Below the pieces are notes generated by a model that searched no databases, was not told where the DNA came from, and saw only the letters and a program-made list of their open reading frames with translations. Positions 444 through 29,291 of a stretch of 33,689 nt of DNA are shown here, piece after piece. Source of the stretch: Macrostomum lignano (taxonomy: Eukaryota); NCBI GenBank assembly GCA_002269645.1, contig NIVC01004840.1:1-33689 (forward strand). The letters are read 5' to 3'. A program made the translations under genes and the position numbers. How positions within the stretch are numbered: the first letter of the stretch is position 1; each line of letters starts with the position of its first letter.

Positions 444-1389
444 TTACACAATGTGCCGATTAGCGTGCGTTTTTAGATGGCTGCCTTGATTAAATCGCTT
501 GCCGCACACCTTGCACTCAAATGGTTTTTCTCCTGTGTGCAGCTTTGAGTGAGAAGAGAGCTGCTGCTGAAACTGAATCTCATGCCGCACACCTTGCACT
601 CGAAAGGCTTTTCTCCTGTGTGCACCCTGGAGTGCTTAGTGAGGTTGCTGCTGTCACCAAATCTCTTGCCGCACACCTTGCACTCAAATGGCTTTTCTTC
701 TGTGTGCACCCTGGAGTGCCTAATGTGGCTGCTGCTGTCAGTAAATCTCTTGGCGCACACCTTGCACTCAAATGGCTTTTCTCCTGTGTGCAGCCTTGAG
801 TGGAAGAGAGGCTGCATGCTTGACTAAATCTCTTGCCGCACACCTTGCACTTGTGCGGTTTCGCCTTCTTGTGCACTGCACTAATGTGAGCCTTTAAGTA
901 GCTTTTTCTGGTGAACTTCTTCTGGCAAGTGTCGCACTGGAACGACCTCTCGACAGCCTGAGCTTGACGTTGCCGTGTTGCAGCACTGTTCAAAGCTCGG
1001 GTGTTCCCGGCTGTCTCGCACTCGGGACTCTTCGTCACTGCAGAACTGCCGGCTGCACACGGCTGCATCGCTAACTCATTGCGAGACTCGACCTGCTCGA
1101 CCGCCGCCGCTCTGCTAGCTTCTGAGTTGGTCGCAGCCGCCTCCTCTGGCTCCGAGTCGCAGCCCATTCCGTGTGACCGCACATGACGCAAGTACTGCGC
1201 CGCTGCCGATCGGGTGCGGCAGAACCGCCTGGGACAAAAGGGGCAGGCGACAGAGCCCCGGGGCATCTCTGAGGAACTGTGTGGCTGCGATCTGTGCGGA
1301 GATGCCGATGCTCGAAGCCCGTCTCTGCCGGAGCTGCAATTCAGAGCGGTAGGGACTTCGTCACTTTGTGATCCGAAATGGAAAGACAT
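444..1389 (-). pseudogene. C2H2 zinc-finger gene 1 (class A 3' end), about 6 fingers, two 1-bp frameshifts
   Basis: ORF 580..1389 gives the shared N-terminus plus F1-F2; ORF 473..817 continues [11 protein letters not shown] fingers; the last frame ends [23 protein letters not shown] (stop at 444-446). The frameshifts near 810 and 560 are single-base losses and could be sequencing errors. Confidence 0.75.
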
Positions 1390-1719
1390 GAAAGGAAGGG
1401 AACTCTCCCCATTCTACCTCTCCCCCGCCACGTCTACCCCAAACTGACCCAGTTGCACCGCGTCATTTTTCTGTCGGTATCATCTTTCTGCGTTCCCAAT
1501 TCTGCGTGCTTATTTGAGACGGTTTGGGAAATTAAACAAAACGGCGCGTTTTAAGCTGCCGAGTGTCAATGTACATCATGATTTAGAACTTGAATTTAAG
1601 ACAACCAATTGATGATGGATTTAACCGAGTGAAAATGTTGCTGCTAAACGGCATGATGTGCATGGTTAAATTTACACTGATGAGCAATCCTTGGCTCGTG
1701 AAAGATAGTGAGCCAAAGC

Positions 1720-2245
1720 CTTCCAGGTAAACTTCCTAACATACAATTTTTTCTTGATTTTTGCTCAATTCTTCCATTATCTCATTCAATTTTCTACTGG
1801 AGACCAGATACCAACAATTTCAACTATCACTGCATGGTCCTCACTTCGGTAAAATAGATTTACAATAAAACAGTTTTTAGTTGCCTTATATATACCTAAA
1901 CGCTATCTAAGAGAGCAAGCTCCGTCCAGCCTCCAAAATCATTATCAAAGGCTTCGAGCTTGTCCGCCTGGATCGCGCGGGCCTGCAACAAAGGAGCTTA
2001 CAAAGTGACTTCGATACTGGTGTGATGATGCCTTGGAAATTATATATACAGGACCCCTGAACCATCAAGCTTCAGGGAAAGAATGACTCAAAAACAGGCT
2101 GGTTAATAGAAGCAAAGCCTGTTGTATATTTGAATATCGTACGCAACGCGACGATGCCGTTAAACAATTGTTTGAACAGTGCACGCTTACAGATCAAACC
2201 GAACTCAATCGGTGCTGTTATCATTTAATACCGCAGTCTCAACCA
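1720..2245 (+). mobile_element. Degenerate non-LTR retrotransposon (LINE) APE endonuclease fragment
   Basis: Hand translation gives AI*ESKLRPASKIIIKGFELVRLDR, resembling the A/IQE(T/S)KL...I.GY...R.DR motif of LINE endonucleases; the block is absent from the homologous site at ~24115-24130. Confidence 0.55.
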
Positions 2246-2364
2246 ATTTTTACCGGGTTTGGATTGGTGTTTTAGCTAAATCAAAATAAACAGTTTATTT
2301 TTATTATCGCTAGACTGCCTGGCAGGACCCATTGATTTCTGCCAATTGTACTGCAACTTTGCGC

Positions 2365-2490
2365 GACTGAACAATTTAAGGTGGATGCGCAAACCGGAGC
2401 GAAATACTAAAAAGCCGTAACAAAAAGGGTGGGTAGGCGGCCCCACTGGCTAAGACGAGCAAAGCCTAAAGGCCAGCCAATCGAAACGAA
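2365..2490 (-). promoter_or_regulatory. Candidate promoter (CCAAT box, GC-rich box, TCAGTC Inr-like motif)
   Basis: CCAAT 2477-2481, GGGTGGGTAGGCGG, - strand TCAGTC at 2365-2370; upstream of gene 1; motif-only evidence. Confidence 0.3.
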
Positions 2491-2894
2491 ATTTGGTGTC
2501 AGAATTTAAACATTTCTCAGCTGTCTCAGAGACCGGCTTATTGGAACTTTACTGGGACAGCATTTTTGACGAATGCACGATGTCAAATGCTTCTACAATC
2601 TGACGCGCCAACTCGGAGTTTAAAGGTGCAATTTCTAGATGGTGGAGAAGCTGGTAGCAATTATTCTATTGTAAAATATTTATGTAGCTAGGGATTTTCT
2701 CAAGTGCTAATGAACTGTACTGTCTTGCGCAATGTGAAAGATAGAGCTTGTAACAGGGACTACTGAGCACTCCCGACTATGCTCTATACTTTCATTTTTG
2801 AGCCGTCCTCTTTAAGTGTTCATGCAAAAAACCGCTAATCGGAGACACAAGCCCATAGATTTCGAGATTTCATTACTAACGACAACAAACAGCA

Positions 2895-26305: not shown

Positions 26306-26425
26306 CAATTTTACCGGGTTTCGATTGGGGTTTTAGCTAAATCAAAATAAACAGTTTATTTTTATTATCGCTAGACTGCCTGGCAGGACCCATTGATTTC
26401 TGCCACTTGTACTGCAACTTTGCGC

Positions 26426-26550
26426 GACTGAACAATTTAAGGTGGATGCGCAAACCGGAGCGAAATACTAAAAAGCCGTAACAAAAAGGGTGGGTAGGCG
26501 GCCTCACCGGCTAAGACGAGCAAAGCCTAAAGGCCAGCCAATCGAAACGA
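26426..26550 (-). promoter_or_regulatory. Candidate promoter upstream of gene 9
   Basis: Same motif block. Confidence 0.3.
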
Positions 26551-26956
26551 AATTTGGTGTCAGAATTTAAACATTTCTCAGCTGTCTCAGAGACCGGCTT
26601 ATTGGAACTTTACTGGGACAGCATTTTTGACGAATGCACGATGTCAAATGCTTCTACAATCTGACGCGCCAACTCGGAGTTTAAAGGTGCAATTTCTAGA
26701 TGGTGGTGAAGCTGGTAGCAATTATTCTATTGTAAAATATTTATGTAGCTAGGGATTTTCTCAAGTGCTAATGAACTGTACTGTCTTGCGCAATGTGAAA
26801 GATAGAGCTTGTAACAGGGACTACTGAGCACTCCCGACTATGCTCTATACTTTCATTTTCGAGCCGTCCTCTTTAAGTGTTCATGCGAAAAACCGCTAAT
26901 CGGAGACACAAGCCCATAGATTTGAGATTTCATTACTAACACGACAACAAACAGCA

Positions 26957-27580
26957 TGGTGTCAGAGGAACACAGCTAACGATTAACTCTTTAGCGCATA
27001 CATCATTCAGTCGCTATACAGCTAATAATCTAATTCAAAGCCGACGCTTCGATACACATGGCTGGCTGATACAGGAGAGTTGAAGCCACCAGCATCCATC
27101 GTATTCGATGAGAACAAATGAAGAAGTGGAAACATGAATTGCTGGTTTCGCACTCTCCCTCACAGCCGCGAAGCGAGATAATGAAAGCGACGAGCTGAAG
27201 ACCGCCATTCTGCTCACAGCACTTGGAAGGTCTTTCAAGGTCAAAACAGCAGAAACAGAAAGATTCCTCGCAAAACGCCACGCTAACACCAAACTTGACT
27301 CGATTCCCGAAAGCATGCAATTTTTTTCAAAATTCGACAATTAAGACAGCATATGAGCACTATGATTAAAGTGCATCGAAACAGGTTACTCGGAGGGCAC
27401 CAAGTGATTCAGCCACCCAGCCGAAACTCTATATGACGGATTCTGATCAAGTTGTGAAGCTATCGGACAACTACAGATCGACCTAACTTTGGCAATTTGT
27501 GACTTCGCTAACTCAATAATTAGAAAGCTGACAATCACCGAACTATCAGTCTATAATATTCGTGCCTACTGTGCGCAGAA
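26957..27580 (+). mobile_element. Gypsy-like remnant family 1, copy 4
   Basis: Homologous to 2895-3500. Confidence 0.55.
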
Positions 27581-27905
27581 TTTTATAAGCAAAAATTAAA
27601 ATAAGTCAAACGAGAAGTAGCATAAGTGCCGAGTACTCGTACAGTACGCAATGTGACTACTGGAAAAAAACTGAAAACATTTGGCAGCAACAGCTCATCA
27701 GTGCATCAACTTCCTCATGCATCCTAAAGGAAAGATTCAAGACAAAGCATAATTACATAGAAACAAAAAGCTGTTAAACGATTGCAAGTACTCGTACACT
27801 GAAAACGCCTGGAGCACAGAAAAACAAAGATCGTGTGTCCATTTCTACAATCACGGTGCGCAAAGTTAAATATTCGTTGAAAAATGTGCTGCTTGGAGTG
27901 CCTCT

Positions 27906-29291
27906 TCAGATTGCTGCCTTAACTGAATCTTTTGCAGAACACCTTGCACTCGATGGCTTTTTCTTGTGTGCACCCTGGAGTGCTTAGTGAGGTTGCTGCT
28001 TACATGAAATCTCTTGCCGCACACCTTGCACTCAAATGGCTTTTCTCCTGTGTGCAGCCTTGAGTGGGAAGAGAGGCTGCATGCTTGATTGAATCTTTTG
28101 CCGCAAACCTTGCACTCGAAAGGCTTTTCTCCTGTGTAAGCCTTGAGTGCCTAGTGAGCTTGTAACTGAAAGCGAATCTCTTGCCGCACACCTTGCACTC
28201 AAATGGTTTTTCTCCTGTGTGCACTCTAGAGTGAGTAGTGAGGTTGGAGATCTGGTTGAATCTCTTGCCGCACACCTTGCACTCGAAAGGCTTTTCTCCT
28301 GTGTGAAGCCTAGAGTGCTTAGTGAGGCTGCTGCTGTCACTAAATCTCTTGCCGCACACCTTGCATTCAAATGGCTTTTCTCCTGTGTGCAGCCTTGAGT
28401 GGGAAGAGAGATTGCTTGCTTGATTGAATCTTTTGCCGCAAACCTTGCACTCGAAAGGCTTTTCTCCTGTGTGAAGCCTAGAGTGCTTAGTGAGGCTGCT
28501 ACTGACACTAAATCTCTTGCCGCACACATTGCACTCAAATGGCTTTTCTCCTGTGTGCAGCCTTGAGTGGGAAGAGAGGCTCCATGCATGACTGAACTTC
28601 TTGCTGCACACATTGCACTCAAATGGCTTTTCTCCTGTGTGAAGCCTAGAGTGCTTAGTGAGGCTGCTGCTTTCACTAAATCTCTTGCCGCACACATTGC
28701 ACTCAAATGGCTTTTCTCCTGTGTGCACTCTAGAGTGTGTATTGAGGTCGCTGCTGAAACCGAATCTCTTGCCGCACACCTTGCACTTGTGCGGTTTCGC
28801 CTTCTTGTGCACTGCACTAATGTGAGCTTTGAGGTGGCTTTTTCTGGTGAACTTCTTCTGGCAAGTGTTGCACTGGAACGCCCTCTCGACAGCCTGAGCT
28901 TGACGTTGCCGTGTTGCAGCACTCTTTGAAGCTCGGGTGTTCCCGAGCCTCGCACTCATGACGCTTCATTGGCTGCATCGCTGACTCATTGCGAGACTCG
29001 ACCTGCTCGACCGCCGCCGCTCTGCCAGCTTCTGAGTTGGTCGCAGCCGCCTCCTCTGGCTCCGAGTGGCAGCCGATACCGTGTGACCGCACATGACGCA
29101 AGTACTGTGCCGCTGCCGCTCGGGTGCGACAGAACCGACTGGGACAAAAGGGGCAGGCGACAGAGCCCCGGCGCATCTCTGAGGAACTGTGGGGCTGCGA
29201 TCTGTGCGGAGATGCCGATGCTCGAAGCCCGTCTCTGCCGGAGCTGCAATGCGGAGCGGTAGGAACTTTGTCACTTTGTGATCCGGAATTG
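27906..29291 (-). pseudogene. C2H2 zinc-finger pseudogene, gene 10 (class C 3' flank), 11 fingers plus remnant
   Basis: Conserved ATG replaced (in-frame TAA), frameshifting deletion near 28960, 2-bp deletion near 28137; fingers in ORF 28000..28959. Confidence 0.85.

Follow-up and report, generated by a model that had tools for sequence, protein, structure and literature searches.

The 33,689-nt stretch of Macrostomum lignano DNA analysed here (contig NIVC01004840.1 of assembly GCA_002269645.1, in the following called the window) carries ten C2H2 zinc-finger gene copies (G1 to G10), which lie head-to-tail at positions 444-29291, all on the minus strand. From their sequences we consider it likely that they belong to a young Krueppel-type family of poly-zinc-finger (poly-ZNF) genes, so far seen only in M. 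lignano, that has grown by nested duplication and whose finger arrays have been remodelled by exchange of whole finger units. Tandem duplication would have acted at three scales, namely on finger units of 84 or 168 bp, on whole genes (giving the classes A to D) and on a block of about 11-12 kb. About ten finger types would predate the copying of the large block, which would be the reason why helices recur in different genes. Once the blocks had been duplicated (their spacers diverge by about 1.7%), remodelling of the arrays would have proceeded mainly through homology-driven, in-register unequal exchange between 84-bp units, be it by crossing-over, conversion or slippage, with whole fingers being duplicated, deleted or fused. 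Single-residue changes in the helix would contribute besides, structural residues would be kept by purifying selection, and copies would be born and die (birth-and-death evolution).

The layout of the genes is that of a single reading frame, in which an N-terminal region is followed by an atypical finger and by canonical finger units. The N-terminal region of about 107 amino acids begins with MRRGSVACPFCPRRFC and contains an acidic stretch rich in Ala besides one atypical Cys2-His2 finger. The first finger of the array is also atypical (CxTCQKKF...HISAVH, with H-x4-H spacing), whereas the canonical fingers, three to ten per gene, follow the unit register T1-G-E-K-P-F-E-C8-x-V-C11-G-K-R-F15-[16-20]-L21-[22-23]-H24-S-R-L/V-H28, with TGEKPFEC linkers in nearly all units. 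Here, codons 16-20, 22 and 23 represent helix positions -2 to +3, +5 and +6. With tandem C-x2-C-x12-H-x3-H fingers and TGEKP-type linkers between them, the genes belong to the Krueppel type. Searching with a regular expression gave 59 C2H2 fingers, on the minus strand only, and a scan with a profile built from these fingers gave 66 units of 84 bp in the ten arrays. Tandem Repeats Finder reported a period of 84 in all ten arrays and additionally a period of 168 in five; the longer period is the better fit in arrays having both (e.g. 93% vs 80% in G9), because fingers ending in ...LTKH and ...LSSH alternate. Matches to the Pfam families zf-C2H2 and zf-H2C2_2 have E-values of 1e-25 to 1e-85. Four full open reading frames (ORFs) and the N-terminal region matched only C2H2 families in Pfam and no KRAB, SET, SCAN, BTB or ZAD domain, which bears out the lack of KRAB and SET proposed in an earlier note on this DNA; likewise, no Pfam match of the cluster proteins to SSXRD or to a KRAB-related N-terminal domain was obtained. 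Transcript-based GenBank proteins begin just upstream of the N-terminal finger, and therefore no hidden upstream exon adds a domain. The copies fall into class A (G4, G8), class B (G5, G9), class C (G2, G6, G10) and class D (G3, G7). A literature search found no published description of this M. lignano cluster.

The genes sit in a repeat of about 11-12 kb, of which about three copies are present in the window, ordered C-B-A-minisatellite-D along transcription; the block was found again on other M. lignano contigs. In the alignment of copy 1 (1606-8045) to 14042-20803, mismatches amount to about 1-2% in the spacers and to 12-16% in the arrays, where unit indels come in addition. Copy 2 (13073-17598) aligns to copy 3 (24781-29294). 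While spacers between the copies show 0-9 mismatches per 200 nt, about 1.7% overall, arrays show 17-33 mismatches per 200 nt and gaps of 84 or 252 nt; they are the most divergent segments of duplicates that are otherwise about 98% identical. Units that can be matched between arrays differ by 1.8-2.1%, equal to the spacers. The excess divergence of the arrays is therefore due to gain, loss and replacement of whole units and not to faster point mutation.

Individual unit events can be recognised between duplicates. In class C, G2 has the atypical finger and eight units followed by a frameshifted remnant, G6 has the atypical finger and ten units, and G10 has the same number as G6 plus a remnant. 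Their unit orders differ as well, as had been described before, and the spacers around them, about 98% identical, are closer than previously thought. Unit-by-unit alignment gave four unit indels between G2 and G10 and at least about five each for G2 vs G6 and G6 vs G10. The array of G7 is 252 bp longer than that of G3, corresponding to a three-unit indel, and G4 and G8 differ by one unit while their flanks differ at 3 positions in 1200 nt. Unit 1 of G4 is a hybrid that exactly combines the 5' part of G8 unit 1 with the 3' part of G8 unit 2. In G6, unit 2 consists of a standard linker fused to the body of unit 1, i.e. a duplicated GFSSDLNTH with swapped linker. It is followed by four identical 84-bp SDSSSLTKH units (units 3-6; 16579-16914, minus strand), which have a silent T at unit position 63 that the remaining SDSSSLTKH units of the window lack; G6 has five SDSSSLTKH units in total. 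This private marker points to amplification within G6. The same four-unit run is present in the Mlig_3_7 assembly. Finally, units 4 and 5 of G7 form a tandem pair, 3 nt apart.

The comparison with copies on other M. lignano contigs extends these observations. Arrays are identical where the flanks are at least 99.4% identical to the window gene; an exception is a G10-like array in locus L004, which is identical despite an upstream flank at 97.1%. With flanks at about 98-98.7%, most copies have different unit numbers and orders, and those with flanks in this range to G5 or G9 have arrays of 6, 7 or 11 units in differing orders. Class A arrays across contigs read GFA-HVA-GFN-SV-TQ-NR, GFA-GFN-SV-TQ-NR or GFA-GFN-GFN-TQ-NR, and class D arrays have 2, 3, 6 or 8 units. 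Unequal in-register exchange between 84-bp units, as the earlier note had proposed, is directly visible in the exact hybrids, in the indels of 84 or 252 bp between flanks 98-99.8% identical and in the four-unit run. The near-identical locus copies make up a natural time series, with arrays mostly unchanged at a flank difference of up to 0.6% and mostly remodelled at 1.5-2%, and this series could be used to determine the rate of finger-unit turnover relative to point mutation.

It had also been suggested that unit exchange changes the fingers faster than point mutation. This is true only roughly: the class C pairs are separated by 4 to about 6 unit events, as against 6-9 point differences in matched units. 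Between G2 and G10, only about four point differences alter a helix residue. Unit turnover contributes to the changing set of helices at least as much as point mutation does, but it is not faster by orders of magnitude.

The concentration of variation in the helix, within a near-constant backbone ending in ...HSR[LV]H in all ten paralogs, was clearly recovered. Pairwise non-synonymous diversity (pN) is 0.42 in the helix codons (-2 to +3, +5, +6) and 0.04 in the backbone, which is about a tenfold difference. Synonymous diversity is 0.36 in the helix and 0.29 in the backbone, and the ratio pN/pS is about 1.1 and 0.14, respectively; the backbone is therefore constrained, yet not homogenised at silent sites. 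These Nei-Gojobori values are used for the contrast between helix and backbone only: pairwise omega (the dN/dS ratio) per codon is saturated between finger types, and switches between serine codon families inflate pS of the helix. According to a study of mouse Prdm9, tree-based codon models are invalid for such repeats (PMC3890296). With recombination in the arrays, tests of selection that build on trees lose their validity. In a minimum-spanning network of unit haplotypes from the window and four other loci, the recent steps comprise 21 non-synonymous and 1 synonymous change in the helix and 16 and 26, respectively, in the backbone (Fisher p = 8.5e-6). Relative to pooled synonymous change, helix omega is about 0.8-1.1; values of 2-5 are reached only relative to the few synonymous changes of the helix itself, where the excess over neutrality is not significant for recent steps (p = 0.058) and has p = 0.011 when all steps are taken. 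Since the result shifts with the synonymous class chosen as neutral reference, omega above 1 is not claimed. The backbone, with many synonymous and few non-synonymous changes, has an omega of 0.12-0.28, which means that purifying selection has acted on the finger fold over the same period.

Within the helix, variation does not follow the DNA contacts in the way the earlier note expected, which had placed an excess of non-synonymous change at the contact positions and confined hypervariability to -1, 2, 3 and 6. The canonical contact codons show 48 non-synonymous and 9 synonymous changes and the positions -2, +1 and +5 show 47 and 2, so that the contacts are no more variable. Position -2 changes most often of all, and codons 9 (K/N/M) and 27 (L/V) vary too, following finger type. 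Helix positions -2 to +6 appear effectively unconstrained.

At this point we want to note several observations that weigh against a family remodelled by unit exchange and still maintained. The pairwise homoplasy index (PHI) test inside the 84-bp unit was not significant (p = 0.67 and 0.87). By the four-gamete test, 54-56% of site pairs inside the unit are incompatible, without distance dependence; given the PHI result, these incompatibilities are not assignable to recombination over recurrent mutation, and mosaicism within units is not claimed. Exchange between genes, unlike that within arrays, is seen only in chimeric flank patterns, with no mapped conversion tract. The order and number of the large-repeat copies differ between the window and Mlig_3_7 across a 42-bp minisatellite. 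Moreover, dN/dS of the N-terminal region is 0.5-2.2, from small counts and close to neutral evolution, and together with the four pseudogenes and a helix omega near 1 it would also fit a family drifting towards loss.

Under such a drift, the arrays would be a dispensable and unstable coding minisatellite nearing pseudogenisation, in which helix variability reflects relaxed constraint and remodelling has no functional consequence. The real lesions in four of the ten copies and the truncated array in one agree with this, as do the N-terminal values and the lack of an excess at canonical contacts over -2, +1 and +5. However, relaxed constraint does not extend to the finger fold, where the low backbone omega indicates purifying selection, and five or six copies retain reading frames of 270-415 amino acids, several having transcript-based gene models. 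We therefore regard neutral decay as unlikely. The working DNA-recognition repertoire claimed by the earlier note is nevertheless unproven, with four pseudogenes among ten copies and the N-terminal dN/dS as it is.

Whether fingers were exchanged at all, or only inherited, depends on how the relationship of the units is read. Among 62 units we counted 35 distinct helices, of which 11 recur and 24 are single, many of the single ones being close variants of recurring types; the small recurring set described before thus exists, next to a larger number of helices seen once. SDSSSLTKH occurs ten times in five genes, and HVSSNLTKH and several other recurring helices three to four times each. Units of the same type from different genes are 0-4 nt apart, whereas adjacent units of different type are 15-27 nt apart, and for 53 of the 62 units the nearest relative lies in another gene. 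The distance in the backbone alone goes with helix class, at 4.6 vs 8.6-8.9 differences, and is independent of gene, different finger types having 8.9 backbone differences within a gene and 8.6 between genes; hence there is no PRDM9-style concerted evolution within arrays, and the homogenised backbone assumed before does not exist. Finger types carry linked silent backbone markers and are older than the gene copies. The grouping of fingers by helix type and not by gene was correctly predicted, but it does not decide the matter because recent gene duplication predicts the same pattern as module exchange.

Indeed, ten recent copies of one many-fingered ancestor, with orthologous fingers, few deletions and no module exchange, would give exactly this clustering. 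The ends of the arrays are anchored, as all class C copies begin with the same finger and have the last finger plus remnant in common, and the non-significant PHI test and the divergence of matched units at spacer rate are in line with such plain descent. Deletion alone, however, cannot make the four-unit run of G6 with its private marker, the GFSSDLNTH duplicate with swapped linker or the tandem pair of G7, nor does it agree with the differently ordered arrays of 6, 7 or 11 units next to flanks like those of G5 or G9. We consider plain descent with loss to be quite unlikely as a full account; it survives only as part of the preferred explanation, in the form of ancient finger types with recent gains as well as losses.

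The agreement with Mlig_3_7 contigs bears on the quality of the underlying sequence. Contig NIVC01001846.1 is 99.75% identical to window positions 21074-32903, and NIVC01002369.1 is 99.56% identical to 13285-21861 and 98.2% to 1-11324. Outside minisatellites, the differences (1-7000, 13285-20990 and 21900-32903 compared with loci L002 and L001) are nearly all single-base homopolymer indels, occurring on either side. The compared contigs appear to represent the same locus as the window or a near-identical duplicate. Each array has the same unit composition in the window and in the matching Mlig_3_7 loci, the substitutions diagnostic of the copies are consistent and lesions are shared, and with lengths of up to about 0.9 kb the arrays easily fit into single long reads. 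All this argues against copies or array lengths arising from mis-assembly of a repetitive, recently polyploid genome, which we hold to be very improbable, even though the homopolymer indels are many, the arrangement of large repeats across the 42-bp minisatellite differs and duplicated blocks with an identity of at least 95% make up 180 Mb of the published assembly (PMC5730564). One Mlig_3_7 contig joins different large-repeat copies across the 42-bp minisatellite. Annotators should be aware that single-base frameshifts vary between assemblies and that the order of the large-repeat copies is not settled.

A function like that of PRDM9, in which the array directs meiotic recombination or chromatin marking under Red-Queen positive selection at the contacts, can practically be dismissed: the 84-bp coding minisatellite, the distinct first unit and the terminal remnant with a stop codon do resemble mouse Prdm9 alleles (PMC3890296) and non-synonymous variation is concentrated in the helix, but PR/SET, KRAB and SSXRD domains are lacking, there are ten paralogs instead of a single gene, arrays are not homogenised, finger types differ by 15-27 nt and not by a few contact codons, and omega above 1 is not demonstrated, so that by sequence features membership in the PRDM9 family is essentially refuted.

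The cluster is a new example of a behaviour known from mouse KRAB-ZNF clusters and PRDM9, and not a new mechanism. In behaviour, the finger plasticity of mouse KRAB-ZNF clusters is the closest counterpart, nearer than PRDM9. In mouse clusters of KRAB zinc-finger proteins, a finger may be tandemly duplicated up to four times, combinations of fingers are repeated, new 'fingerprints' arise rapidly and many pseudogenes are found (PMC5363842). The KRAB-ZNF clusters of mouse and other tetrapods and the M. lignano locus are lineage-specific tandem clusters that grew by segmental duplication and contain genes as well as pseudogenes; both have single-exon Krueppel-type arrays with TGEKP linkers and helix-concentrated variation, and recent paralog clusters with gain, loss and duplication of fingers. 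In contrast to the mouse genes, the M. lignano cluster lacks KRAB, so that no recruitment of TRIM28/KAP1 is predicted, has an orphan N-terminal region and is found in a flatworm, and positive selection is not demonstrated for it. With PRDM9 it has in common the 84-bp units in one exon and the change of copy number by unequal exchange or slippage, as well as a distinct first unit, a defective last unit and mostly non-synonymous helix variation (PMC3890296). Apart from the missing domains and the number of paralogs, it differs from PRDM9 in that its finger types are old, differ at linked silent sites too and are not homogenised within arrays, and in that variation at -2, +1 and +5 is as strong as at -1, 2, 3 and 6. 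Of the PRDM9-like dynamics postulated in the earlier note, the turnover of 84-bp units remains, whereas homogenisation within arrays does not.

Another instructive case are the FiNZ-ZNFs of cyprinid fish, an independently and rapidly expanded ZNF subfamily with its own N-terminal domain, in which the helix and the residues that contact bases belong to the positions that vary most (PMC10547256). A link between ZNF expansion and transposon load has been proposed across metazoans in this survey, whose main text makes no mention of flatworms (PMC10547256). The N-terminal region of the M. lignano cluster differs in having no similarity to FiNZ, or to any non-Macrostomum protein at a useful threshold. 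If the intact copies work, they would represent an independent flatworm invention of the strategy of fast-evolving poly-zinc-finger clusters seen in tetrapods and fish, with a different and hitherto unrecognised N-terminal domain. M. lignano is accessible to transgenesis, and its genome is repeat-rich and recently duplicated.

The N-terminal region was compared with 5.8 billion proteins and matched only hypothetical M. lignano proteins at 79-100% identity. Against 1.84 billion representatives, it gave M. lignano proteins and weak, repeat-driven hits only, and no fish proteins. Its finger CPFCPRRFCRTRSAAAQYLRHVRSH, located at 23652-23748 in G8 and at the equivalent position in each copy, has a C-x2-C-x16-H-x3-H spacing, longer than that of a classical C2H2 finger. 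With E-values up to 1, Pfam yielded sub-threshold matches to zf-C2H2_4 (E = 0.006) and C5HCH (E = 0.025) and no match to the zf-BED profile. A weak likeness was detected to the repeated BED-like fingers of a 3242-amino-acid protein (P0013), with 25-30% identity and an E-value of about 1e-3 per repeat; a search of PDB sequences gave Sp1-type C2H2 peptides only, at an E-value of about 0.4. An effector domain or a remote homologue was thus sought in Pfam, among the representatives and in PDB, and had to be abandoned with just this sub-threshold C2H2 and BED-like similarity. BED-type fingers have an N-terminal aromatic motif that is lacking here, and the BED-type likeness is to be taken as a lead and not as a classification.

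We infer that the intact copies encode sequence-specific DNA-binding proteins and that remodelling would alter their targets, which may be repeats or transposons. In analogy to the KRAB-ZNF or FiNZ proteins, one may tentatively think of a flatworm-specific repressor system directed against repeats or transposons, with an orphan N-terminal effector made up of the atypical BED-like finger and the acidic region, and with a repertoire renewed mainly by unit remodelling; we regard this as possible, though doubtful. The 42-bp minisatellite inside each large-repeat copy would be a possible candidate target of such a system.

The individual copies differ in their state of preservation. G1 (444-1266) has six fingers, the atypical H-x4-H finger and five units, with 1-nt deletions at 559 and 801; both are missing from the Mlig_3_7 copy (L002), where an intact annotated protein (P0006) is encoded. 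G2 (class C; 3806-4955) has the atypical finger and eight units, followed by the frameshifted remnant at 3806-3889 with a stop codon at 3826. Its 1-nt deletion at 4945, just after the ATG, is again missing from Mlig_3_7. These three 1-nt frameshifts are probably assembly errors. A reading of all frameshifts as pseudogene lesions was rejected for those in G1 (559, 801) and G2 (4945) after the comparison with Mlig_3_7. G5 (class B; 12873-13784) has an intact frame, with an ORF reaching upstream to 13979, and consists of the atypical finger and six units, whereas G6 (class C; 16231-17478) has an intact frame of 415 amino acids with the atypical finger and ten units. G8 (class A; 22852-23748), for which the transcript-based protein P0001 is annotated, has an open frame with the atypical finger and six units; the first His is missing from unit 2 (HVSSAFTTY), and 12 nt are deleted in frame from the last unit. 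Transcript-based GenBank gene models cover G1, G8 and the region of G6. As described for Mlig_3_7, its GenBank gene models rest on transcripts (PMC5730564).

G9 (class B; 24590-25408) has an open frame too, but its array ends after four units at about 24650 and runs into an unrelated tail, a structure repeated in a copy on another contig (L005, 13915-14334). Its fifth unit is broken, and the tail at 24590-24650, about 60 nt long, is a fragment similar to the 5' leader of family genes (..DGLRASASPHRSQP..). This segment is a rearrangement junction. Judging by the frames, G1, G2, G5, G6 and G8 are potentially functional, and G9 is doubtful.

The remaining four copies are pseudogenes. G3 (class D; 6211-6832) has lost its ATG and about 190 nt of the N-terminal region and is frameshifted after the first finger, with three units left. 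G7 (class D; 18746-19470) has the N-terminal deletion and the frameshift in common with G3 and retains six units. G4 (class A; 11390-11872) is truncated at its 5' end, homology beginning within the first finger. G10 (class C; 27886-29176), with the atypical finger, ten units and the remnant, lacks 2 nt between the N-terminal region and the array as well as 4 nt within unit 8, the latter lesion being found again in loci L001 and L004. The lesions in these four copies and the truncation of the G9 array are real, because paralogs or other contigs carry them too. The family goes on past the window: about 8 kb beyond its right end, NIVC01001846.1 encodes an intact class D-like gene with eight units (P0003; L006, 10001-10822), and arrays of up to 13 units occur on the same contig. 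Class D thus has an intact gene elsewhere, of which the copies in the window are decayed versions.

Some features of the large repeat and its surroundings remain to be described. No mismatch was found over 800 nt between 13357-14156 and 24981-25780, and 0-3 mismatches between 10609-11808 and 22058-23354; these tracts of 800-1200 nt cover promoters and N-terminal coding regions, suggesting either recent conversion over large tracts or partial duplications of younger age. A G-rich minisatellite with a 42-bp unit, TAGGGTGGCTAGGGAGAGTCTTAGGGTGGTTTGGGTGAGTGA, lies between class A and class D genes at 8211-10234 (about 47 copies), and a second one at 21004-21861 (about 20 units), inside which contig NIVC01001846.1 ends. 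There is one such minisatellite per large-repeat copy, and it yields long spurious ORFs in several frames. In the spacer between G3 and G4, an ORF of 118 amino acids (7566-7922, plus strand) has a vaguely gag-like look and no Pfam match at E-values up to 1. For the repeat ORF at 30871-31482, Pfam gave nothing useful. Right of the cluster, an unrelated tandem repeat with periods of 23, 57 and 80 bp (31013-31450) gives Pro/Arg/Ser-rich pseudo-ORFs; it is followed by a (GA)n tract at 32893-33164 and by a 32-bp GC-rich repeat (33537-33689) that runs off the end of the window.

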